A stretch of DNA of 64,000 bases from Hyaloraphidium curvatum SAG 235-1 (lineage: Eukaryota > Fungi > Monoblepharomycota). Below, piece by piece: positions 2,421 through 37,501 of this stretch. A program made the position numbers and the translations under genes. How positions within the stretch are numbered: position 1 is the stretch's first letter; every line of letters begins with the position of its first letter. Location of the stretch: NCBI GenBank assembly GCA_025558095.1, contig JAIVFI010000010.1, positions 496,001 to 560,000 of the forward strand, written 5' to 3'. The notes under the pieces are model-generated. The model was not told the DNA's origin, searched no databases, and saw only the letters and a list, made by a program, of their open reading frames with translations.

Positions 2421-2696
2421 TTGTGCCGGCGATGCAGTGACTTCGCCGAGCAGCGCTTTGACAGCTGCGAAAGCAGCTCCGCGAATGATTACGGGCCTCT
2501 GCCGCGATCACGCCGGACTTCCATGCACTGCTTCAGAGATCGTCTCGGAAAGCCGCTCCTTCGTATCCATTGATAATACAGCCTCGACAACCCAGACTTG
2601 TGCAACACGACGTTGGTAAAGCGGACATCGCATAGATTCTGAAGTAGTGACGGCTTAACTCTATTGTTCTGATCTACATACAGAGATGATCTTGCC

Positions 2697-3845
2697 GGTG
2701 GGCCCAGGGCAGCTGCGCACCCCGGTGCCTCCTAGCCGAAAGGCAGGAGGGTCGAGCGGGCGTGCGCGCTGGGGCCGAAGCCGCAGAGGTCCCCCGCGGA
2801 CCGCCCCCTTACCCATTCTTGCGCGTGCCTGCTGGAAAGGCCGGTTCTTCGCGGGTCCGGAGCAGCTGTGCACCCCGGTGCCTCCTAGCCGAAAGACAGG
2901 AGGGTCGAGCGGGCGTGCGCGCTGGGGCCGAAGCCGCAGAGGTCCCCCGCGGATCACCCTCCTACCCGGTCTTGCTCTTGCCGAGGTCGGGGCGCTGCGC
3001 TGTGTGGAAGGGCGGAAAGTTAGAATGCGGCAAGCCGGCCGCCTTGTGCTTGAGGGCCGAAGGTGGTCGCTTGGAGCCGGTCTCGGACGACTGATTGCCC
3101 GCCGCTCGCCGGCGCGGACAGTCGGGGCTGAGCCCATCGGCCGACTCCACATCCGACACTTGGCCTTGCCGCCTTGCCGCTTGCCTCGGAGCCGGTCTCG
3201 GGCTGCACCGTCCCCACGACGCCGCGCCGGACGCGTGGTGGAGGGTGCCGGGCAGAGCCCGCCGGCCGCAGCCGACCCCACATCCGACACTTGGAGATGC
3301 TGGATTGCTGGATGCCTTGCCACCTCGTCGACGGATGCGGATGCGGTGCGCTGCGCTGCGAGGAGGGTGGTGGTTAGTATGCGGCAAGCTGGCCGCCTCG
3401 TGCTTGAGCTTGACGTTGGCGCTTGGAGTCGACCTTGCGCGCCTTGCTGTTGGGCCCAGGGCAGCTCGCGTCCCCACTGCCGCCCGCGCCTTGCGGCGGG
3501 ACGGATCACCGGGCGACGCTGCTGGGGCCGAAGCCGCAGGGATCCTCCACGGACCACCCCCCTACCCGGTCCTGCCGCCCTGCCGCCCTGGCGTCCGATC
3601 GGCCTGGAGGGAACGCAATATTAGCGCGATATCTCTGCGTTGATGCGTGCGCACCTGCCTTGCCGTGCGCCCCCACGCGTGGACGGCACCCCCCCTCCCG
3701 ACGCCCTCCCAAACAATGGGCCGTGCGCCGCCGCCAGCGCCACCCCGCGGGCGCCCCGCCGCGCACGTGTCCGCCCGTGCACGGGCAACAGCCGGGGGGC
3801 ACGCCGGCCCGGGGCGGCGGGGCGCGGGGGCGGGGGAGGGTGCCG
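2697..3845 (-). ncRNA. Putative modular structured RNA / hairpin array (left copy)
   Basis: Three A modules (two in 153-bp tandem at about 2700-2975, one at about 3450-3580), two B modules and two C hairpins. Reverse complement of the array at 16811-18354. Confidence 0.45.
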
Positions 3846-4347
3846 TTGATTGAGGTCGAAATTGGGCAGGTCTCAGATTCGGATGCCGCCGGCTTATGTA
3901 CTTCTTAACCCAGCTCTACCCTAGCTCATCGCGATGCGGCGAATCGAGTACTCTCCACAGCTAGCTCGCTGCCCGGGCTGCCGCCTCCGGGGGGTCACGC
4001 ATTTGCATTCGCCCTTTTTGGCAGCCGTTTGAGCCCCCGGAACGGGCGCCCCCCGCCCTGGGAGACAGGGCGGGCTCTCCATCGATTGAAGGCGGATTGC
4101 GATATTTGTCTCTGCGCTCATTACCAGCGCTTAGGAGAGTGCGATGCCCGCCCGGCAGCCGCATTGCATTTCAAATGGAAGATGCTCGCTCTGCGATGAC
4201 AGCTCCCGGACTAGCGGACGTACGCGGACAGTTCTCCGACACTGCAGGCCTCATGAACAATCGCTTCATAGTCATAGGTATTACATGATGGCCACGATAG
4301 TCAGCTCGCAATGTCCATGTCCATATGTGCCATAAACAGACCCGAAA

Positions 4348-13049: not shown

Positions 13050-16000
13050 TCATCCGCTTCTCCCCATCCGGCTTGACAGCACGTTGTAGCGCATTTCGTC
13101 GAGCTTTGCGTGCACCTGGTTGGCGACTTCAATCACGTCCGCAGGGAGGCCAGCAATCCGAGCCACGTTTATCCCGTGACTGTGCTTCACGATGCCAGGT
13201 ACGACACGGTAGTCAAACAGGTACGTTCCGTCCGATCTTTCGTGGAGGGCGGTCCGGAAGCACGCCAGCTTTGGCAAAGACGACGCTCGCCCTGACTCGG
13301 CGGTCTCGAAAACGAGCTCGGCCAGCTCGTGAAGATGGGTGGCGAATAGGGTGTTGCAGCGCGAGTGCTGGAAGCAAAAGGTCAGCAAAGGCGGTCGCCA
13401 AACAGCAAGGACCGGAAACAAACATCGTGCAGGTACTGAATGACTGCGTACGCTAGGCTGATGCCGTCCTTCGTGGACGTTCCGCGGCCCAGCTCATCAA
13501 TGACCGCAAGCGAGCGCTCCGTTGCGTGGTGCAGGATCTCCGCCGCTTCAACCATCTCCACCTGAAGAAACCATCTTGTTCAAGACTGCCAGTGGCAAAT
13601 TGGAGACTCACCATAAAAGTGCTCTGGTTGCTCGCCAAATCGTCCGATGCTCCGATGCGAGTGAAGACACGGTCCACGATGCACAAGTGCGCTGACTGGG
13701 GAGATGTCAGGGACAAGATAACGGCAGCGCAAGTCGGCGCCGTGCTGCACACCTTTGCCGGAACGAAAGATCCGACCTGTGCCAAGATCTGAATGATCGC
13801 GCACTGGCGCAGAAACGTCGATTTGCCGCCCATGTTGGGACCCGTTAGGAACAAGATCTTGGTGGAATCGTCCAGGGAACACGAGTTCGGAACAAAGGTG
13901 CCCTGATTGCGTTCTAACATGGCCGCTTCAACCACCGGGTGACGGCCCTCGCTGATGGCAATAGACGTTCCATGGCGGTCGATTGTGGGGCGGACATATC
14001 CGAAACGCTTTGCCACCTTTGCCAAGCCCCATGCAACGTCCAAATGAGCCAAAGCTGAGCATGATTCGATGATCCTGGAGCCTCGTCGGATGACCTGTTC
14101 GAAAAATTGACGCACGGTGTTGCACCCGACAGCGATCTCCAGCACCGTACCTCGTCGAAAGCTTCAATCATGATCTGCTTCTCGAGCCCGAAACACCGCA
14201 TTTCCAACCGACTAATGTCTCCGTGCAGAGCCGTCCACTCCTTGATCGCAAATTCCCCATCCGCTCGTGACCGTTTCGCCGACGGAAAGGCAGACTGGAA
14301 CTTGGGGGCTTTCTGCTTCCGCACAAACACGAACGGTCCCGCACGCAAGCTGTAGTCTAGCTGCACGTCGCCCCGTCCGAGGCCGGCCATAAGTTCAAGA
14401 GAAACGGTAAGCTTGTCCCTTTCGCTGTAAAGGTCGGCAAGCACGGCACGCTCGTCATCAAGGCTTTTGCTGATACCTGGTGCAACCATTCCAAGCTCAA
14501 ACTTCCGCGGGAGATTGCGCAGAAACGAGCGATCGTCAGACGCATCGCTCGCGCCGTCTTCCGTCCCGAGAGAATCATCGCGTGCAACAAGCGGTTGCAG
14601 CCTCTCGACGAGATCGCTAAAGTCGTGCAGTTTCGACACGAGGTCCGGGCGCACGGCGACGAACTCGGCCGTTCCGAGGAGCTTGTTCCGCAGGCTCGTC
14701 AGCTCCCGCAGCGTCAGCGCAATGACAGCCATATCGTACGGGCCCCCGCGTTCCATCGAGATCCGCCCGAGCGTACGCTCGACGTCCGAGGTCGACCTCA
14801 ACCGATCGGCCACGTAGTTGACCAGCGGATCATTGGCCCGAAGGAAAAACTCGACAAGATCCAATTTCCTCTCAATCTCATCTGCATCCGTCGATGGGCT
14901 TCGAATCTGGGAACGAAGCAACCTTGCTCCGGGTGCAGTCAAAGTTTCATCGAGCACCGAGACGAGGCTCCACGCTTTAGAGCGAGACCCGCTGTCCGAC
15001 TTCAAGGGTTGCAGAAGCTCCAATGATCGGACCGTTGAAGGGTCGAGGCGCATGCATTTGGCGGGGTTGAACTCGTCGATCCCGTGAATCGCCAAGTGCC
15101 GCCCGCCCTGCGCTTCCGCAACGTAGCCGAGGAGGGCTCCGCAAGCCTGAATCTGCAAAGCGTCAAGTTTTTCGATGGATAGATCGGCCTCGGGCCCGAG
15201 ATGCTTTGCCACGAGCTCTTTCGCGTCGTTCAGGCCGAATGCGGAAGCTGGCCGTGCAGTGACAAAGTCCTTTCCTTCGCCCAGCAACCCACACTTCTGC
15301 AACGCGAGTCGTAGTGCCCGCCATTCACGATTCGATTGGTCTGCGAAGGAGTTCGGAACTAGGACTTCGCTTGGCTGCAAGCGAGCAATGTCAAGAGTAA
15401 TGGTCTTCTCGGTCGCTTTGCCGACGGTGAATTGACCAGTCGAGACGTCAATCCAGGCTAGCCCGTACGTTGATCGCAAGGGGCTAGAGCTGGCGGAGAT
15501 CGCTAGCAGGTAATTGCTTTGCTTGGGGTCTAGGAACGCCTCGTCCATCACGACACCGGGAGAGATGGCCTCCGTCAGAGTGCGAGTTATCGTCGCTCTG
15601 GAAGCCGTTGGCGGGGAAAGCGCAGGCGTTTCGGCAACATCTGGACCTTCTGTCGTTTCAGAAGCCTGCGTCACTTGGTCGTACACAGCGACCCTCAGTC
15701 CTGCTTCCAGCAGCTTCCGAATGTTCGCATCACGTGACGCCAGAGGAAAACCGGCCATGCGAGCGGTCTTCGTCTTTCCTTCTCCTTCCTTGGTCGTGAT
15801 CCTGAGGCCCAAGATGGAGCTCGCCTCGTCCAGCATAAGATCGTGCGCGTGCCGCGACTGATCCTGCTTGTCCTTCGGCCGCGAGTATATCTCATAGAAG
15901 TCACCTATCTGGAAGAGAATGACGGAATCCGGATGACGGTCTTGAACGGCAATGAGCTGCTCGAAAATGCTCGGAGCTTTGGCCGGTCCGGCACCGCGAG

Positions 16001-16214
16001 CTCTCCGTCGTTTCGTGGGCAGGGCCTCAGCTGCTCCGTCGGTCGCAAGGCATCGCAAAGACAGCGAGAACGGGCTCCGTTGAGCCAGACAGTCCAGACA
16101 AGACGTCCCAGGAGTCCGAATGGGGCGAAACCACGAAACAGTCATTGAACGCGTCGGTGGCCCAGCAACGCGTCGCAAGGCCCGCATGGCTGTCCAAGGC
16201 AGTAAATTCGCCAT
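13050..16214 (-). CDS. MSH1: Mitochondrial MutS homolog (multi-exon)
   Basis: Arg-rich presequence-like N-terminus; [46 protein letters not shown] motifs. Confidence 0.88.
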
Positions 16215-16810
16215 AGACACGCGACTATAGTCCAACGCAGGCCAGGGGACGGTGCTGCCGGGCGCAACTGGTGTTTTCCCAAACTCCGCCCGCGCGGCCT
16301 GAGGCCGCCAAACGGGCCAACTCCCCTTCAGAACCGTCCCGCCGAAAGAGGCTCAATCGCCCTGGTCACACTGTGAGAGTTGCAATTCGTCGAACCAGCA
16401 AGTGTTCCTTGCGCTCGAGAATGAAAGCTGGCGCCGCGGAAGGGCCGATAAAGCAAGCTGTTATCTGACGCGTGCTCCAGTTTATGAGGAAAACATACTA
16501 GACATCTACAGCACGTCGCGAGAGTCCAATCATTGGCCTCAGAGACAAACAGCCCAACCCGCCCCGAATCGACGAAGCATTCGCACTGTCTCCCAGGGCG
16601 GCGGGGCGACGGTTCCGGGGGTTCGAACGGGTGCCGAAAAGGGCGAATGCAAATCCGCAAACCCCCGGAGGCGGCAGCCCGGGCAGCGAGCTAGCTGTGG
16701 AGAGTACTCGATTCGCCGCATCGCGATGAGCTAGGGTAGAGCTGGTTAGGAAGTACATAAGCCGGCGGCATCCGAATCTGAGACTTGCGCAATTTTGGAC
16801 CTCAATCAAC

Positions 16811-18354
16811 GGCACCCTCCCCCGCCCCCGCGCCGCGCCGCCCCGGACCGGCGTGCCCTCCGGCTGTTGCCCGTGCACGGGCGGACACGTGCGCGGCGGG
16901 GCGCCCGCGGGGCGGCGCTGGCGGCGGCGCACGGCCCATTGTTTGGGAGGGCGTCGGGAGGGGGGGTGCCGTCCACGCGTGGGGACGCACGGCAAGGCAG
17001 GTGCGCATGCATCGACGCAGAGATATGGCGCTAATATTGCGTTCCTTTCAGGCCGATCGGACGCCAGGGCGGCAGGGCGACAGGACCGGGTAGGGGGGTG
17101 GTCCGCGGAGGATCCCTGCGGCTTCGGCCCCAGCAGCGTCGCCCGGTGATCCGCCCCGCCGCAAGGCGCGGGCGGCAGTGGGGACGCGAGCTGCCCCGGG
17201 CCCAACAGCAAGGCGGACAAGGTCGGCTCCCGCAGCAACGTCAACTCAAGCTCGAGGCACAAGGCGGCCAGCTTGCCGCATCCTAACCACCACCCGCCTC
17301 GCAGCGCAGCGCACCGCATCCGCATCCGTCGACGAGGCGGCAAGGCATCCAGCAATCCAGCATCTCCAAGTGTCGGATGTGGGGTCGGCTTCGGCCGGCG
17401 GGCTCTGCCCGGCACCCTCCACCACGCGTCCGGCGCGGCGTCGTGGGGACGGTGCAGCCCGAGACCGGCTCCGAGGCAAGCGGCAAGGCGGCAAGGCCAA
17501 GTGTCGGATGTGGAGTCGGCTTCGGCCGATGGGCTCAGCCCCGACTGTCTGCACCGCGCCGGCGAGCGGCGGGCAATCAGTCGTCCGAGACCGGCTCCAA
17601 GCGACACCTTCAGCCTCAAGCACAAGGCGGCCAGCTGGCCGCACCCTAAGTCCCTTAAGTCCCGCCCTCCCGCGCAGCGCAGTGCATCCGTCGACGAGGC
17701 GGCAAGGCATCCAGCAATCCAGCATCTCCAAGTGTCGGATGTGGGGTCGGCTTCGGCCGGCGGGCTCTGCCCGGCACCCTCCACCACGCGTCCGGCGCGG
17801 CGTCGTGGGGACGGTGCAGCCCGAGACCGGCTCCGAGGCAAGCGGCAAGGCGGCAAGGCCAAGTGTCGGATGTGGAGTCGGCTTCGGCCGATGGGCTCAG
17901 CCCCGACTGTCTGCACCGCGCCGGCGAGCGGCGGGCAATCAGTCGTCCGAGACCGGCTCCAAGCGACACCTTCGGCCTTCAAGCACAAGGCGGCCAGCTG
18001 GCCGCATCCCAACTCCCGTTCTTCCCACAGCGCAGCGCACCGTACAAGCTCGGCTGCTCGACAGAGTCGGCAAGGCGGCAGGACCGGGTAGGGGGGTCCG
18101 CGGAGGATCCCTGCGGCTTCGGCCCCAGCGCGTACGCCCGCTCGACCCTCCTCACGTGCGACGAGGAGGCACCGGGGTGCGCAGCTGCTCCGGACCCGCG
18201 AAGAACGCGGCCTTTCTGGCAGGCACGCGCAAGAATGGGTAAGGGGGCGGTCCGCGAAGGACCTATGCGGCTTCGGCCCCAGCGCGCACGCCCGCTCGAC
18301 CCTCCTGCCTTTCGGCTAGGAGGCACCAGGGTGCGCAGCTGCCCTGGGCCCACC
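16811..18354 (+). ncRNA. Putative modular structured RNA / hairpin array (right copy)
   Basis: Order: leader domain, A1, C, B1, B2, C, B1', B2', C, A2, A3. Compensatory stem changes between modules, cUUCGg and GCAA loops, and G-U pairs on this strand. Confidence 0.5.
17257..18006 (+). repeat. ~362-bp tandem duplication inside the array
   Basis: ccaagtgtcggatgtgg at 17366, 17497, 17728 and 17859; the left arm has only one unit. Confidence 0.9.
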
Positions 18355-18624
18355 GGCAAGATCATCTCCTCATGTAGATAAGAACAATAGAATTAAGCAC
18401 TACTTCAGAATCTATGCGATGTCCGCTTTACCAACGTCGTGTTGCACGAGTCTGGGTTGTCGAGGCTGTATTATCAATGGATACGAAGGAGCGGCGTTCC
18501 CAGACGATCTCCGAAGTGCATGGAAAGTCCGGCGTGATCGCGGCAGAGGCCCGTCATCATTCGCGGAGCTGCTTTCGCAGCTGTCAAAGCGCTGCTCGGC
18601 GAAGTCACTGCATCGCCGGCACAA

Positions 18625-20066
18625 ATGGGATCGCGCCTGACTGAAGCGGAGGCGCGCGCGATACCGCCGCTGCTCGAGCTGCCGCCCGAGGTGCTGCGAA
18701 TGGTGCTGGACGAGCTGCCGCGCCGCGACGCCGCGGTGCTGCTGCGCGTGCACTCTGCACTGCTCGCGGCAGCCTGGCCGGCCGTGTGGGCGCACGTGGA
18801 CGCGACCGACCGGGCGGGGCGCGGAACGCTGCGTGGCGTGGTGCGGACGCTGCGGCGCGCGGGAAGCACGGCGGACCGGATGCGCCCGTACCGCGCGGCG
18901 CCGTGTCCTCCGTCACATACCGCGGCGGCCACGTCACGGATCTTGCGCCATTGCTGGAGTTTTGCGGCACACATCTGCGAATGCTGGACGTGGGAGACTG
19001 CGAGCTGGGACGCGTCGCGCTGGGCACGGTCTTGGCCCTCGTGCGGCCCGATCTCGACGAGCTTGCGATGCCGCTGTCGCCCGCACGTGCTGCAGCCGGG
19101 GTCGAGCCGGATGCCGGGGAAGTCGGCGTTGCGTTGACGCGTTTCCGGAGCCTGCGGCGCCTCAACGTCGCCGGGCGGATGCTGTCTGCCCTCGAGATGG
19201 CCGCCGTGCGGGCACTGCCGCTGCAGTCGCTGACTACGAGCGAAGAATCGTGGATTTCTGAGAATGCTTGCGTCGCTGCACGTTCGTTGGTGGGGCTGGA
19301 CTCGCTCTCGACCGTCCGCTTCGCGTCTTGTTACGATGTCGGCATCGTCGGCCTGCTGCCGGCCGCCCTGGTCAGCCTGGAGCTCATTGTGCCCATCGAT
19401 GCCGACCGCATGGAGGGGCTCTGCACGCTGTTGCGACAGGTTGCCGAGCTGCCGGCTCTTGAAGCTATGATCCTGGGCGATTCTCTGAAGAACGGGCTCT
19501 TCCAGCCCGGCAAGCTCTTCTTTGGGCAGATTGGCAACCTGCTGGAGAAGGAGCGGCGAGGAACGCACGACACACGGCCGCTCAGACACCTGGAACTGCG
19601 CCTGCGACTGCCGGACGGCTACGCCAAAATGCTCTTCGAAATCGCCTTTGCCGGTGCCGCGCGCTCGGGCCCGCTTTCCCTCGAGGTGCTGGTGCTCGTT
19701 GCGGACGGCTGCGTGTTCCAAGACCAAGCGTACGCCGCCCTCAAGGCCCTGCCTGCCGGTGCAGTGCCGCATCTCCGCTGGCTCGAGATCCGTTCGCGCG
19801 GGTTCAAGATGGAGTGGCTGCAGGGTATCATCGAGGCCATGCCGAAGCTGTCCCGCTTCCTCTGCATCGATCCCGCCGTGACGACGAAGGCAAAGGACAG
19901 GCTGATCCGCGCAAAGAAGGAGCTCGACCGCCGCGGCATCCGCTACGACATCGATACCAACCTCGGAACGGGGCGATTCGAAGCCTCGGCGCGGCAAGGC
20001 CTGCGCGTTTTGGCTGGCGATCACTCGGTCCGCGTGCGGCTTGTGGAAACCGGAAGCCGCCGGTGA
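18625..20066 (+). CDS. F-box-like/LRR-like protein (~480 aa) with a single frameshift near 18855
   Basis: F-box-like N-terminus in ORF 18625; LRR-like body (LRMLDVGDC, FRSLRRLNV, LRHLELRL, LRWLEIRS) in ORF 18786..20066. One extra base would join them, so this is either a pseudogene or an assembly indel. Confidence 0.7.
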
Positions 20067-21206
20067 TTGGAGGACGGAGGCGGTCTGAGGTGCGAGGCTT
20101 GCATTACAGCACGCTGTTGCCTCCGCAACTTTCGCCGACCGGACACAACAGAGCGACGGGCCAGACACCCATTCGTGCCAACGAGGCTGTGTTCGATTGG
20201 TGATGGCTGTTTCAGGATGCGTCAGTTCGAGAGCTAAGTTCGAGAGCTCAGTTGGAGAGTCTGTTGCTCACCTCCGAATTCTGGTCTCTTCTCCCCGCGT
20301 GGCAGGAATACATTTCTCAACCATTGCTTCTCTTATCCGCCTCGAAAATGCCTTTCGTACCCAGGATCTTCCACCGTGTCCGGCAACCGCCCACCACCTC
20401 CACCCGGGGATCGAACGTCCGACCACCAAAGGATTTCCTGCAAGTCTAGACAAATGCCTCCTCGAATTGGGGATCGCTCCAGCATTAGAATGTGTGCTGT
20501 GCGGAAGCGAGCGGTGGTGCTGGAAGCTCCAGTCCGTCGGCTGCCTTCGCGCTTCGGGCCACCGGCATCATTTCCGTGTCGCGTCGCCGAAACGATGGCT
20601 CACGACTTTTGGGGCTCTGGAGCTTCAAGTTCTGTTGTGCAGCGCGAGGTAGTGACGCGGCAGTGGATGTGCGACCGGGACAGGGATCAGCGACCGTGCG
20701 CGGACTTCGCTCGAGTGCTGAGCCGCAATTGGCGGTCATGGAGCAGTCTCCCCTTCCGCACCGTCGCGCTCTTCCCCGCGTGGAGGTGCAAACGGCACAA
20801 TCGGCGCTGGCGACCATGAAGGACTGCACTGAGCTGTCCCGCGCTCCATTTGCGGGAATCCCGTCTGCCTTGGGTCGGGAACCGTTCTATTGTGTCCGAT
20901 TCGGGTTTTATTGGCTTCTTCCGGACGTCTCTTGCCCGGGTTTCGACGATGGGATGAGCACGGAGCGTAGCGCGGTGTGTACGCTCAATCCAGGCCTCTC
21001 TCCCATCACACGCCCCGAATCCCGGTCCAAACACCGGACGCCGGTGCCGCTTGCCGCTCCGGAGCCCCGCCGCGCCCCGCCGTGTTCGCAAGCGGAACCG
21101 CGGAGCCGCATTCTGACTAGGCGCTTTCAGGCACTTCCCGGTTCGTATCGTCGCGGGCGAACCGGGCGCCGGTGGCCATTGTTTGGCACTTCATTTCGAG
21201 ACGACT

Positions 21207-31759: not shown

Positions 31760-34700
31760 TCTCATTCGACAACTACGCGTACACAACTTCTTTTCCGTTC
31801 TTTCAACAAACACTTCACGAGCCTAAACTTTAACTTCGCGTTTCAACCGTGTAAAGTGCTGTTTAAGGGTGTAGTGTGCAGCGGGTTTGCTCAACTGCTT
31901 CAACGCCAAACATTTGGGGGTCCCCTAACTTTGACCGGTTAAAACCCCGCTTTTTTATTATGAAACCGCTCTTACAAATTTAGGAGCCGACGCGCGCGCT
32001 TCTTAGCTTCACCTCCCTTGGCCATCAGACCCCCCGAAGATACGTGTTGCCTCGTCCGACTCGCGCCTTTCGAGCCAAACGGTTTGGCGCGCGCCTGCGG
32101 ACGCGCCTTGCTTTATCGGAATGATTTGGGGTGATGCTCGGTTGGTCCCTGCGGGCCGTGCTGGCGCCGGGCGCCCGCAGGCCGGTCCGCCGGGGCCGGT
32201 GCCCCGCCAGCACTCGAGCCGTGGTCCCGCGATGTCTTGCCGGGAAACGACTCCCCGATCATGGCGCGCATCTGATTCGGCGGCCCCGCGTGTGGTGCTG
32301 GCAGCCGCCTGCGGTCTCGTTCCAAACAACGCACACCGGAGCGTTCCCCGAGCACCGCGCGCTCCGAAACCGGGCCGGACCACGGCAGGCCGCCGAGGCG
32401 GCCAACCCTGCGCGCGCCCGCGCCCCGCAGTGCCCTGCGGCGCGCCGTGCTCCGGCGCCGGCCGCCGCGCCGCCGTATCCTCACCATCGCCCGGATCCGC
32501 GGAACCAGCGAGGCTCCGCACGGGACGGTTTCCCATGCACCGCGTCGCCGCCGCATCGGGCTGTGCCCTCGGGGCTCGGCGGGGAACGCGCGTCTCCCGC
32601 TCGCTCCCGCACCGACTGCTTAGGTGGACTCTGGACTGTACCCCCAGCGAGTCCGAGCGGTGACGATGTGCATAGCGGCGCGCTGTCGCGGGGAAGGAGC
32701 CACGGGCGGCGTGAGGTTGGACGTGATTCGGCGCCTGGAGACGCAGCTGCCCCCGAGGGGAAGGAGGAGGAGGTGGACGCCGCCGGAACCGAGGCGCGGG
32801 ATTGGTCTCGCTTGGGGTCTCGCTTCATCTGACGGCGGGGGCAGCGGAAGGCTCGTCCCGCGCTGCGAACCCCGGGGAGTTCGACGCCGTGACAATAGCA
32901 GTGCAGATCGGCACTGCCCGGCCACGTCGACGTGGCGACGAGGTGCAAGAGGGCATGTTCGGGACTCGTCGAGCTTTTATTGATCTGAGTGGAGACTTCG
33001 CGCGACCACAGGCTACTGTGCCACATGGCACCGCGTTCGCTTGCGGACGACTGGAAGCATTTGCTCGCAGAGTGGCCGCGGCATCCCATGCCGCGCCCCC
33101 CGCGGAGCTACGCCGCCGTCCCTCTGGAGTGCGGGGTTGGAATCGCGGGGCACCGGAGAAGGGGTGGGCGCCTTGCGTGAACCGCGGAGGCAGATGGCGG
33201 CCTTCGGATCGCCTTTCAGATGGCGCCAACGGAGATGGTTTGCGGGCGGAGCCGAAGAGGAACGCAGTCGACCGCGGCGCCGAGATCAAGGCTCTTTCAC
33301 CACTCGACGACTTTCTGAACGGGCTGGAGCCAGCCCGTTAGCTGCAGCGGAGATGGAGCCCAGCGCAGCTTCATTTGGTTGGAACCTGTTTTGGAAAGAT
33401 GTGCAATCGAAAGAACAAACACTACCATCTCGGAAGTTGATCCAAAGAAGATGAACATCGAAGACACCGTTGTTTCGAGGCCTGGCGACGAAAGCTCTCC
33501 CGCCGATGAACGAAGGCTCTCCCGCCAGATGGCTCCCAGCCTTCTCGTCCCAGAAGGTAACGTCCCCGAACCAACTCCGAATAACTAGAAGGTATCAGAA
33601 ACCTAAATGACCTGCCCAGCGTCACCGTCGGTCCAATGGCCGTTTCCATGGCGTTGCCTGCGCCGTGCACCCGTCCAGGCAGCATCGAAACCATCAGCGG
33701 TTCAGTTTCGCCAGAATGGATCCGTTAGTGTCGCCCAGTAGACATATGCGGCAGCAGAAAGCAACTACGGGGAGGAGACGGCGACCTTGGTGTAGCGAGA
33801 TCCCCCTTCCGCAGCAGAGTTGTTGACGGTCGCCCGCATTTGCCTCGCCTTGTTCCCCTCCAACGACGAGAACAGCATTCCCGCCATTGGCCGGTACCGG
33901 TAACCGACCGCTCTCGATCGATGACCAACAGCCCGGGAGAGCGGCGCCGCCGAGGATTCGCGGCGGGATGCGCACTCAAATCGAACGAGCGACCAGTCTT
34001 CGTCTCTCCCCCCCGCAGGTACTCGGCCGACAAGTCGAGTTTGATTCTGGGCGGGAAGAGAGGCGCCTGCGGCGCCCCAGGTAGGCAGAGACGCCGGCGG
34101 GCACCGACGCGGTCTGGCGGCGAGGTTGTGTTGTCCGAGCGGGCGACACGTGGCCCCGGCGCGTTTCCGGACGAGTCATCGCCGGCCGGCCGCCCCGAGG
34201 CTTGCTGCGCGGTGCCGCCTGTGTTGGAGATACCCACGGACAGCTGGCAGTCCGTTTCTGCCCACCCAACGCCAGACGCCTGGAGCTTTTGCAAGACACT
34301 TTTGTAAGCCTCGCTTTCCCCTGACGGCCGCGATTCGCGCTCACCTCATCGTACCCGCGGCAGAGCTCTCCTGTACCCGCAATCCAGCAATAGATGTCGC
34401 TGTCGCGGGGGCAATTGCCCGCGCGACGCGGCCCTGCACGTGGCTTCGCACGCCTCCACCTCCGAACCGCCCGCTTCCGGGCCCATCGGAGGCGTCTGAG
34501 GCCTCTTCTGCCGGCAACAGCTCGCATGGGAGCAGCGGCGTCCCGATGAGCTAATGACAGCGGGGAGGGTTGGCCGGCGCGCACCCGTCCATCACCCCCG
34601 CTGCTCTCCCCTTTCAAAGACCGCACACGGGAGCCGCGAACACGGCCCTGCGCCCCTTTCCGCAGTTCTTTCGCTCGAGCAGCTACGCACTCTTCGTTTT

Positions 34701-34941
34701 CGCGGCCGCTTGAGGGCCGGACGGCGGCGTCGGCCCCCGGAACCACGGACCGTACTCGTCGCGTACCGCGAGCGGCGCCGTTCACCGTTCTTTCCCGCGA
34801 CGCTACCGGTCTGTCATGGGCAAGCAAGTCACGGCCTAGGAGTCTCGTTTGCAGTCTGAGTCTCGCGAGCTGGTTGCCGCAGCTAGAAAGGTACTCGCTC
34901 GATTGGATCTCTATGTCCATTTCTCACGCAGCCTGCGTCAG

Positions 34942-37501
34942 ATGAGCGAAACCAGGCCTCCGTCCAAGAATCGCATGTCGATTCAAGATCTCGCACGAAT
35001 CCTTGCCAAGAAGGACCGGATCATCAAGCCGGGAGTGGTGTACCCCGGGACGAGAATCCCGTTCCCTACGATCTGCACCCTAGACTACACGGAGTTCGAC
35101 TCGGTTTTCTGGGGCGGGGAGCGCGTCACCAGAGTGTGCCCCTGCTGCTTGAAGGGATGGCATGCATTGAGTGACCACGGCCTCAAGTCTGACAACAGGG
35201 AATGGTTCTTGGTCAAAGAGTCCCCGGCTTTCACCGCCGAGTTCAACAAACACGCAGCCGGGCTCATCGAGGTATCGAATCGCGGCGAGCTTCGTGTCAC
35301 GGCCGAGGGCAAGGACTCGATCACGATCACGCTCGTCTCGCACACCGTCAAGGACGTGTACATCACGGCACAGATACGTGACCGCCGAAACTCGAAACAC
35401 ATTTTGGCGAGCGCCGATGTGCATTGCATTACCTACTACTCGATCGTGGGCCTCGGGTTTTCGAGCGAGATCAGGCCGGGGGGTGGGCCGCGCGACCGTG
35501 TCGACCACGTCGACCAGAACAAGACGGTTTGACAAGCTGTTTCTCTTGCTACGCCTGAGTGCTGATCTCCCTTTCTCATATGCAGAACAATGCGATCGAA
35601 AACTTGCGTGCACTCGACCGTGGACTGAACGCACTGAACTGCAAGCGCTACGAGTTTCAGAACATGCCCCAGGGTGCAGTTGCGGACCGATCCACGTGGC
35701 CTGTTCAGTTCGTTCCCACCCTCGAGGCGAACGCGGGCTTCGCTATGGAGTGGGGTTCCGTCCGGGAAGCTGGAGATGCCAAGGTGCTCTACTCGCAGTT
35801 CGAGAAGGACAAGCGATACCGCGACACGCTTCTCGCCACCGGTTCGCTTGGGCAGGCCGTGAACCCGAAGACCTTGAACTCGAATCAGGTCTGGATCAAG
35901 GACCCGAAAGGGAAGCGCATCGACGGCATCATCCAGTACCTGCCGAACGCGTCGTGCGAGGAAGGAGAGGAGTACGTGCGCCTAACTCTGGGCGACGTCC
36001 GCGACGCCGTGCGCTCGCGAGCCGATCTGCGATCGAAGGAGCGGGACGACGAGGAAGAGCTGGAGGAATTCAAGGCGTACGAGACGATGCAGACCGCAAC
36101 CGAGCTCCTCTCCGAGGTCTACATGTCTACCTACGGCAACTGCATGACGGTCAGTGATCCCGATTGCCTTTGCTTTCCTCACTCACGGGTTTTGCAGCTG
36201 TCTTCCGACAAGCAACCCATGCAGTGGGGAGGGACGAAGAAGGACGACAGGATCCACCGGCTCCGAGTCAAGGTCAAGTGCGAAGACGGCGAAACGTACA
36301 CCGTCCCCTTCACTGCATCTCGCGGTTTCGCGGTTCTTTTCTCCGAACGCGAGGGCGAGCTTGGGCTTGTGCCGTTCTCCGAGCTCGACGTCGACCACGG
36401 CGACAACAGCCACTCCAACAATGCGGCCGTCAACCTGTTCTGGATGTGGCCGAAAGACAACCGCAGGAAGGAAACCAGTGAGTGATAGAATCGGACGATT
36501 CCGCCGGCCTTAATCGCAGCACGGCGGCAGAGAGGAGGTACGCTGACCGCCGGGCGGCTCTCAAGGGTACGCAGCTCCAAGATCGCCGGTTCAACATTGT
36601 TGCTAACCGGTCCGCAGCGGCGGCTGAGCGCAAGGCGGACAAGATCCTCGGCGTCAAGGCGGATCTGCCCAAGGACGGTGCCGCGGCGCCGGCTCTCCCG
36701 AGTGAAGCCGTTCTTCGTCCGGAGGCTCACCCGAAAGGTGAGCTGGGACCCTCGTTTCTGTCGCGCCTGTTAACCTTTCCTTCTCAGCGGAAACGGCGGG
36801 GACGAGCGTTCCGGATGCTGCCTCCGCCCCTGCCACCTTTCCTCCGACTGAGAACTCTTCCTTCCCCGCGAAGCGGTCCCGACCTCAAGGCCTTGAAGGC
36901 AACGGCAGCAGGAGCAACAGCACAGAGCAGGTTTCGGTGAGCCATCTTTTGGCTGGATCTAGTTTCGTCGTGCCTCACAATCTTTCCGAACAGGAACTCG
37001 GTTCTGCGCAGGGTGCGCACGTAGCATTTATGCCAGAGTCTGGTTTCGGATCTCCTCCGCGCAAGAAGCCTTTCGCAATGCCGACAGCCCTCTCGAGCGC
37101 CCCAGTCATCCTGGCTCCGGCGGCATCGGCTCTCCACCAACGGATGGCACCCTTCAGCGTGCCTTCTACGACTGAAGGAGCTCCTCCCGGGCCCAACGAA
37201 AACACTCCGGTGCCTCCTCAACATGTGGGCTTCCTAGCGCTTTCGTGAACGGTGGAGCTCGCGGGTGAAGCAGGTCTCCTAGACTCCGACTCAACAGGAA
37301 CTGGATGGTTATAGGAGCACGATCTCTCGCCTTCAAAGCGAGATAGTGCAAAAGGCCACAGACATCTTGATCCTCAAGAGCAGGAGGCTTCCCCGCGACC
37401 AGGCCAACATCAAGCGGCAGGAGAAGGTTTTGGACAAGATGCAAAGGGAGCTGGAGCTTGCCGAGAAAGACCTGAGGAAGGCAGAACGCAAGGCCCGGTA
37501 G
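34942..37501 (+). CDS. Spliced protein with two tandem NUMOD4-HNH (I-HmuI-like) endonuclease modules and a coiled-coil tail
   Basis: REWFLV..IEVSNRGELR; VDHVDQNKT|NNAIENLRALDRGLNALN formed across intron 35527-35585; second module VYMSTYGN ... VDHGDNSHSNNAAVNLFWMWPKDN. Exons after 36477 are tentative. Confidence 0.75.

Follow-up and report, generated by a model that had tools for sequence, protein, structure and literature searches.

A modular array of covarying stem-loop domains in the genome of Hyaloraphidium curvatum: a probable member of a family of non-coding RNA genes

The polycistronic small nucleolar RNA (snoRNA) clusters of fungi and plants work as precursors that are cut, and bacterial RNAs such as GOLLD, ROOL, OLE and HEARO are large, multi-junction molecules with covariation-supported folds that were found by sequence before function. 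To our knowledge, very few long eukaryotic non-coding RNAs have a secondary structure supported by statistically sound covariation. Here we describe a stretch of DNA from the fungus Hyaloraphidium curvatum SAG 235-1 that resembles these systems in several respects. It occupies positions 16811-18354 on the + strand of a 64-kb window (the whole stretch of DNA analyzed, C10:496001-560000, where C10 is contig JAIVFI010000010.1), has a GC content of 72%, and lies between a MutS-family gene and an F-box-like open reading frame (ORF). It consists of a leader followed by an array of modules of three types, designated A, B and C, all in one orientation. Module A behaves as a structured RNA under selection, and the array is probably one member of a family of modular non-coding RNA genes that is independent and specific to its lineage. 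Coordinates without a contig refer to the window, and all features of the array are on its + strand.

The initial annotation of this stretch had proposed compensatory change in module A and had called for covariance models and a genome search. When such models were built and the 31.9-Mb genome (55 contigs) was searched, 25 copies of module A were found, all of them inside six loci. An alignment of the 22 distinct copies (alignment A1) gave an RNAalifold consensus fold of 29 pairs. Its four helices are a closing stem, in which GGGU.AGGG faces CCCU.GGGCCC; hairpin 1; the invariant hairpin GGC-UNCG-GCC; and a long arm. The compensatory change was confirmed at a level far above chance. Paired cells amounted to 97.5%, compared with 90.0 +/- 0.7 in column shuffles (0/500), and to just 34-54% when partners were slid by 1-3 columns. 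Cells with a double change numbered 49, compared with 16.2 in shuffles (0/500); the corresponding values were 9 and 6.2 for pairs having a double change (8/500), and 31 and 26.8 for further pair types (2/500). Because the copies of module A are paralogs, changes were also counted on a tree, by parsimony on a maximum-likelihood tree with a null in which the partner was swapped for an unpaired column of equal variability (2000 trials). Joint change of both partners on one branch was counted 10 times, spread over 8 pairs, compared with 2.3 +/- 1.4 under the null, which reached a maximum of 7 in the 2000 trials. For example, columns 20 and 151, which pair in the closing stem, changed together twice independently; 10 copies have G-C there, another 10 have A-U, and the remaining 2 have G-U.

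Three subtypes of module A were recognized, with GCGUC/GACGC, GCGCAC/GUGCGC or CACGAC/GUCGUG as the stem of the long arm. The apices of the subtypes are wholly different in sequence, yet each is still a hairpin with a GCAA, GCGA, UUUC or similar cap. Lengths range from 125 to 152 nt, with indels of 1-3 nt; a near-invariant core, CUGCGGCUUCGGCCCCAGC, is kept in each copy, and GGGTA.G is invariant in 22/22. The first copy at the locus under study (17080-17212, subtype i) is a four-helix junction that scores 135.6 bits with covariance model R1; it contains the closing stem, hairpin 1, the GGC-UUCG-GCC hairpin and a long arm with the cap CGCC-GCAA-GGCG. Both of the other copies belong to subtype ii. 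Copy 2 (18078-18206) has the long arm GCGUAC/GUGCGC and the apex CCUCCUC...GAGGAGG, and copy 3 (18229-18360) has the apex CCUCCUGCC-UUUC-GGCUAGGAGG and carries the last GGCAAG linker at its end. Between these two copies is a linker hairpin (GCGGCCUUUCUGGCAGGCACGC, 18207-18228) that is seen again between neighbouring A modules in other loci. The single-sequence folding energies of module A are no better than those of dinucleotide shuffles (z -0.6 to -1.7), a result that is expected, and argues neither way, because the sequence is 72% GC. Of the structure originally claimed for the stretch, the covariation stood, while folding energy added nothing and the fold of the leader, described below, lacked covariation support.

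The pairing in module A depends on the strand that is read. Its stems contain 72 G-U cells in 19 pairs, compared with 7 A-C cells in 4 pairs, and the proportion paired falls to 87.2% on the - strand from 97.5% on the + strand. Over seven units, UUCG was counted 48 times and CGAA 14 times. Because a DNA palindrome or hairpin-templated repair should be strand-symmetric, this asymmetry points to selection on a + strand RNA, not on a DNA palindrome. The claim of a sense-strand structured RNA is thus borne out by the covariation, by the G-U asymmetry, and by the hairpin caps, which are of the UNCG (UUCG, UGCG) and GNRA (GCAA, GCGA) types. Compensatory changes beyond a phylogeny-aware expectation and wobble pairs confined to one strand are what would be looked for in a structured RNA under selection, and both were observed here.

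The same data bear on a very improbable alternative, namely that the array is a DNA-level repeat without RNA function (a minisatellite-like array, a set of promoter or enhancer monomers such as those of the mouse L1 5' untranslated region (UTR) or of ribosomal DNA (rDNA) spacers, or a transposon fragment) whose palindromes are kept by DNA processes. Tandem duplication and variable copy number would fit such a repeat, as would the position of the loci in regions of segmental and inverted duplication and the high GC content, which makes stems easy to form, with folding energies no better than shuffles. However, a 10-fold excess of G-U over A-C and strand-specific UUCG and CAAG are not expected of DNA hairpins, and the long-range closing stem, with arms ~130 nt apart, covaries on independent branches. 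Nor were rDNA spacer similarity or transposon features seen. A comparison with the external transcribed and intergenic spacers, which had been suggested as a check, was done with nhmmer and with blastn at word size 7. The flanks of one small-subunit (SSU) rDNA copy, taken to 10 kb on either side, gave only chance-level matches of 15-32 nt; an rDNA spacer origin was rejected on this basis. We read no terminal inverted repeats or target-site duplications at the unit ends and found no direct pairs of copies around an internal region, although no dedicated transposon library was searched. Long-terminal-repeat features, which the initial annotation had named as possible counter-evidence, were likewise not seen in the unit ends or neighbours, within the same limit as to libraries. 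The neighbouring ORFs (MutS, F-box-like, alpha/beta-hydrolase and MYND) include no transposon-type Pfam domain.

Searches for known families were negative, in agreement with the earlier failure to match the stretch to a known RNA. Rfam 15 gave no matches at gathering scores over the whole window, none at E<=1 over 16400-18700 or in the two distant paralogs L036 and L037 described below, and none at E<=0.1 in array loci L027, L029 and L030. ARAGORN detected no tRNA or tmRNA in 16000-19000. A snoRNA of either class was discarded as an explanation: there is no RTGATGA or CTGA (box C/D) in the 22 module A copies, and an ACA box is not conserved at the 3' ends of module A, which vary (AACAGCAAG, CGGCAAG, CGAAGAAC). 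A protein-coding repeat was rejected as well. At E<=0.1 Pfam recognized nothing in five long ORFs, the modules do not keep a common reading frame, their lengths and indels are not in threes, and indels between L036 and L037 are mostly not multiples of three; the longest stop-free length, 501 aa, is marginally above expectation, being reached by 6/300 shuffles. We also rejected module A as an intron, there being no branch site at a workable distance from the 3' AG, and dropped telomerase RNA and spliced-leader RNA, in view of the number of copies and because there is neither a template nor a conserved Sm site. Exact two-anchor patterns found no homolog of module A in metagenome contigs, bacterial and archaeal genomes or viral contigs, or of module B in metagenome contigs only, and fungal relatives were not really searched. 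Nothing relevant was found in the literature on the organism or on GGCAAG.

Module B was found to have a multi-branch fold comparable to that of A, including a UUCG hairpin, and a long arm that covaries between its two subtypes, B1 and B2. Its cells are 97.1% paired, compared with 90.2 in shuffles (0/500), and six pairs have double changes, in what is essentially a B1-versus-B2 comparison of two subtypes from four loci with a small effective sample. At the locus under study B1 (17362-17475) and B2 (17493-17601) are joined by a (GGCAAGGC)n linker. A second B1-B2-C block is an exact tandem duplicate of 362 nt (17322-17683 = 17684-18045, 100% identity), within which lie B1' (17724-17837) and B2' (17855-17963). 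Every module C, at all loci, consists of a hairpin, a CTAAC-like motif, a sequence-variable pyrimidine-rich tract of 18-22 nt and CAG. Copy 1 (17257-17345) contains the hairpin GCGGCCAGCUUGCCGC (17264-17279), CCUAAC (17282-17287), the pyrimidine-rich tail and CGCAGCGCAG (17300-17309). In copy 2 (17620-17707) and copy 3 (17983-18067) the hairpin is GCGGCCAGCTGGCCGC, at 17627-17642 and 17989-18004, respectively, of which the hairpin of copy 1 is the variant GCGGCCAGCTTGCCGC. A repeat analysis located every module that had been described earlier (A three times, B four times, C three times), and a leader at 16811-16970 has the closing arms described for it.

The linkers between the modules are strongly biased in sequence. 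GGCAAG occurs 47 times compared with 3.9 expected, an enrichment of about 12-fold, and on the + strand only. The (g)caag linkers noted previously were also evident in the shorter motif: over seven units CAAG is present 138 times on the + strand and CTTG 17 times, with 27.8 expected.

The order of motifs in module C (for example at 17264-17310, 17627-17680 and 17989-18030, and in L027-L030) is the one that marks 3' splice regions in this genome. The splice-signal-like motifs of the array (GGGUA(A/G)GG, GGCAAGG and the CUAAC of module C) could reflect either binding of splicing factors or real splicing. On one such reading the array would be part of a spliced host transcript, with the GGGUA(A/G)GG at the start of module A, the GC-type GGCAAGG linkers and the module C signals used by the spliceosome, and with modules excised as intronic RNAs, or a decoy for the U1 and U2 small nuclear ribonucleoproteins (RNPs), as the outcome. 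The CTAAC-like motif, pyrimidine tract and CAG of module C do match real introns of this genome, GGGTA.G is invariant in the 22 A copies, and both the leader and L037 contain short introns of canonical appearance. Against this, the stretch 40-120 nt before the module C CAG holds no consistent 5' site, introns here being 50-70 nt, and the CAG was for that reason rejected as the end of a short intron. In addition, the GUA(A/G)G of module A lies inside a covarying helix, and 3' splice signals are missing between the modules of tandem A-A-A runs. Consistent introns could not be put together inside the array. We regard a spliced host transcript as improbable.

On our reading of the genome, the family consists of six loci of the array type, together with two distant paralogs and a disrupted copy. 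The array-type loci, which all contain module A, are at C10 ~461.6-463.2 kb (-), ~483.9-485.3 kb (+), ~498.7-500.1 kb (-) and ~512.5-514.4 kb (+, the locus under study), and at C11 ~637.4-639.4 kb (-) and ~656.3-657.5 kb (+). The third of these is a second copy within the window (2691-4114), in an arm of an inverted duplication; its order is leader, A, C, B1, B2, C, A, A, with one B1-B2-C block fewer than at 16811-18354, and module number varies in whole-module steps among the loci generally. Orientation alternates (-,+,-,+ on C10 and -,+ on C11), so that the loci form three outward-pointing pairs with leaders 12-21 kb apart, an arrangement that may simply reflect inverted segmental duplication. 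The distant paralogs, L036 (C1 ~992.6-994.2 kb, -) and L037 (C6 ~474.8-476.4 kb, +), were found by searching with the ~450 nt upstream of the first A module, and are 69-71% identical to it in this upstream region. Their bodies are different: GC-rich, ~1 kb long, and composed of many UUCG-capped hairpins followed by GGCAAG-punctuated sequence, with two tandem units of another module type in L036. Model R1 found no significant match to module A in either. The ninth copy, L043 (C1 ~1,038,030-1,040,420; L043 531-2917), is probably disrupted. It is 91% identical to L036 upstream and 81% in the body, and has ~1 kb of unrelated DNA (L043 705-1764) in place of the leader.

The array had been thought to travel as a unit with the downstream gene, which was labelled F-box/LRR. 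That label is weakly founded: the ORF (18625-20863, +), which lies outside the RNA unit, scores 16.9 bits with Pfam F-box, under the cut-off, and its Atlas look-alikes are at 0.89-0.91, and we refer to it as F-box-like. Joint travel did not hold up. Positions 16540-20863 are an 89-93% copy of a 4.3-kb segment that makes both arms of the nearby inverted duplication, and the F-box-like gene is co-duplicated with the array in only these three segmental copies. Loci L027, L029 and L030 share with the locus under study just the region from ~16473, 16587 or 16632 to ~18400, that is, the promoter-like region, the leader, the array and a short 3' flank. Their flanks are unrelated on both sides at the DNA and translated levels, and the left boundaries are not the same among copies. 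L029 and L030 share ~45 nt past the last linker and nothing further. In L029 the next long downstream ORF is convergent, with a borderline MYND-finger match, and in L036 we read a convergent coding exon just past the unit. Given these unrelated flanks and the three distant relatives, the unit looks like a gene of its own, which is more likely than a leader of the F-box-like gene.

It is accordingly unlikely, though less so than the readings discussed above, that the array is a structured 5' UTR or upstream regulatory RNA that controls translation or stability of the F-box-like mRNA. The array does lie on the same strand, with its end 265 nt before the ATG at 18625 (about 270 nt in the initial annotation), it was co-duplicated with the F-box-like gene in three copies, and the short leader intron proposed below would fit an intron of a 5' UTR. 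But the neighbours of three array loci and of L036 are unrelated or convergent, a conserved A-rich 3' element directly follows the array, and a 1.5-kb, 72% GC, multi-junction leader would be expected to block ribosome scanning. On the other side of the array the neighbour is the MutS-family gene (ORF 13914-16235, -; Pfam MutS_I/II/III). Within the F-box-like gene, 163 nt at 19561-19725 are missing from both arms of the inverted duplication, a length difference inside a presumed coding region.

The best-conserved part of the unit is the ~450 nt upstream of the first A module. Within it, a promoter-like region at 16630-16800 has boxes that are conserved or invariant in 7 distinct loci, including L036 and L037: an upstream box GAATGCAA (16645-16652), a telomere-repeat-like box pair CTAGGGTAGAGCTGGTTAGG, also given as CTAGGKTAGAGCTRGGTTAG (16731-16750), a TATA-like element TACATAAG (16754-16761; variants TATATAAG, TACATATAAGG and TATATCAG across loci) and an invariant box AATCTGAGACT (16775-16785). 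The telomere-repeat-like boxes (TAGGGT / GGGTTAG) are directly upstream of the TATA-like element in all family loci, and presumably resemble the Tbf1/telo-box sites of snoRNA and ribosomal-protein gene promoters. We infer that this region functions as a promoter.

A conserved GC-rich 5' leader domain follows at 16811-16970. A 15-mer in a predicted hairpin loop of the leader, CGGCCCATTGTTTGG (16932-16946), has exactly 8 matches in the genome, in family loci only, and the reversed control has none; five matches with one mismatch were dismissed as unrelated chance occurrences. An internal hairpin of the leader shows compensatory change between L036 and L037. The overall fold has no covariation support among the array loci, the RNAalifold covariation term being positive (penalising), and its closing stem is weak evidence because a C-run against a G-run pairs almost automatically; the leader fold is unproven.

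A candidate 51-nt spliceosomal intron was identified at 17001-17051 (CAG/GTGCGC ... GCTAAT ... TTTCAG/G). It is present in 5/5 distinct array loci with signals that differ but remain valid, namely GTGCGC, GTTGGC or GTAGGC at the 5' site, CTAAT or CTGAC at the branch site and YAG at the 3' end. In size and signals it resembles the introns that we read in the neighbouring MutS gene (55-70 nt). L037 has two canonical-looking short introns, at 3535-3590 (GTGGGT...GGCTGAC...CCCCAG) and 3985-4042 (GTGAGC...CACTGAC...CTCGCAG), that are absent or altered at the matching places of L036, a difference that suggests that introns have been gained or lost among the members of a non-coding gene family. At the other end of the unit is an A/T-richer 3' flank (18361-18400) with an A-rich element, AGAATTAAGCA, at 18388-18399. 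An AAUGAA-type A-rich element is found 35-45 nt past the last GGCAAG in five other loci, and is a candidate 3'-end or polyadenylation signal.

Taken together, these features predict a + strand transcript of ~1.6 kb, from ~16790 to 18400, that is probably made by RNA polymerase II (Pol II). The only public run that carries the stretch consists of contigs with a flat depth of ~180-220 over genes and spacers and no intron-skipping joints. Because of this flat depth and the lack of intron skips, the run looks like genomic DNA, possibly from the assembly's own sample. Its only clean joint, 19561 to 19725, is the 163-nt paralog difference described above, and a short-form contig is also in the run.

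The arrangement of a family unit can be summarized as follows. It would begin with the conserved upstream region and its TATA-like box, continue with the conserved GC-rich leader, with a short candidate intron in array loci, and then with a variable number of modules that are predicted to fold autonomously in one orientation, A and B as four-way junctions and C as a hairpin followed by a pyrimidine-rich tail. The modules would be separated by single-stranded (G)GCAAG(G) linkers, and an A-rich AAUGAA-like 3' element would close the unit. Unequal crossing-over may change the number of modules while selection holds the fold of each. The most likely mechanism for such a transcript is that of a multivalent RNP scaffold or sponge, in which the UNCG- and GNRA-capped modules would act as repeated protein-binding units, and rigid modules would keep 10-30 copies of the GGCAAG motif exposed.

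The module boundaries also bear on the closest rival, which we nevertheless hold to be rather doubtful. Here the independent transcript would serve as a polycistronic precursor, and cleavage at the GGCAAG linkers, or trimming to the closing stems, would yield a new class of small RNAs of 110-135 nt with four-way junctions as the functional species. The modules have closing stems of their own and appear to fold autonomously, the linkers are short, stereotyped and strongly strand-specific, module number changes in whole-module steps, and the near-invariant CUGCGGCUUCGGCCCCAGC core of A suggests one recognition site per unit. The telomere-repeat-like boxes ahead of the TATA-like element presumably also resemble the Tbf1-type promoters of yeast snoRNA genes. 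However, there are no C/D or H/ACA boxes and no Rfam match, and the leader and C modules would have no role in a precursor of this kind. Whichever of the two the transcript might be, it is conceivable, at a level well short of likely, that the family represents a previously unknown class of eukaryotic RNA in an early-diverging fungal lineage, in which a Pol II precursor or scaffold of four-way-junction modules would give repeated RNPs or ~130-nt small RNAs, with a function unlike that of any described RNP. Its numerous GGYAAGG motifs, which look like 5' splice sites, might for example titrate factors of splicing or of 3'-end formation.

Several observations weigh against an independent family of modular RNA genes with a scaffold or sponge role. 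The covariation comes entirely from paralogs of one genome, and much of it divides the three subtypes of A; no homolog outside this genome was found in the prokaryote-genome, metagenome and viral scans. The promoter, the intron and the 3' signal are predictions from sequence, as is a + strand RNA of the array, since the single public run reads as DNA. In three loci the F-box-like ORF is 265 nt downstream on the same strand, and read-through or a 5'-UTR role may apply there. The scaffold or sponge role is a proposal.

If transcribed, the array would represent a new family of structured RNAs in a little-studied lineage of fungi and could reveal a new RNP or RNA-processing pathway. Its compact, repeated, covarying modules offer a clean system for the study of structure in long non-coding RNAs, with explicit and testable fold models; at 110-135 nt the modules are within reach of structure determination, and the multi-copy family provides natural variants. 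That what was taken for the leader of an F-box gene is more likely a separate gene also matters for the annotation of this genome.

Two observations were made elsewhere in the assembly. Five full-length SSU rRNA genes are on the minus strand of C1, at 34318-36115, 81263-83060, 112954-114751, 180912-182709 and 260152-261949. They are 32-80 kb apart on the one contig, with flanks of 66-77% GC, and may represent dispersed or very long-spacer rDNA, or an effect of assembly. On C4 (569593-579342), the 15-mer GGCAAGGCGCCAAGG occurs four times at exactly 3245-bp spacing, and therefore marks a 3.2-kb tandem repeat of at least four units; this repeat has no blastn similarity to the RNA family.

Among known systems, the array is like the polycistronic snoRNA and small-RNA genes of fungi and plants in having head-to-tail units in one orientation, one promoter, short spacers and a copy number that changes by duplication. 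It differs from them in the absence of any C/D, H/ACA or Rfam match, in its 110-135-nt four-way junctions, and in its long conserved leader and C modules; processing of the array is predicted only. With the mouse L1 5' UTR monomers and the repeats of rDNA intergenic and external transcribed spacers it shares GC-rich tandem units in variable number upstream of an ORF, whereas strand-asymmetric G-U pairing with compensatory change, the lack of similarity to rDNA flanks and the absence of retrotransposon ORFs set it apart. Fungal telomerase RNA, like the transcript predicted here, is more than 1 kb long, GC-rich and highly structured, is made by Pol II and carries splice signals. The present family, however, numbers eight or nine copies that vary in module content, a 1.5-repeat telomere template was not seen in it, and there is no Rfam telomerase match. 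The array is comparable to GOLLD, ROOL, OLE and HEARO in the features given at the outset; unlike them, it is eukaryotic and nuclear, is a modular tandem array, seems to have a Pol II-type promoter and an intron, and owes its covariation to the paralogs of one genome only. To the Xist A-repeats, NORAD, Schizosaccharomyces pombe meiRNA and the bacterial CsrB/RsmZ there is no sequence relationship, the structured spacers of the array covary and have an invariant core, and the array belongs to a multi-copy family where each of these is a single gene. In all of them, nonetheless, a short single-stranded motif, here GGCAAG, is repeated amid stable stem-loops, and this likeness to scaffold and sponge RNAs suggests multivalent protein binding.

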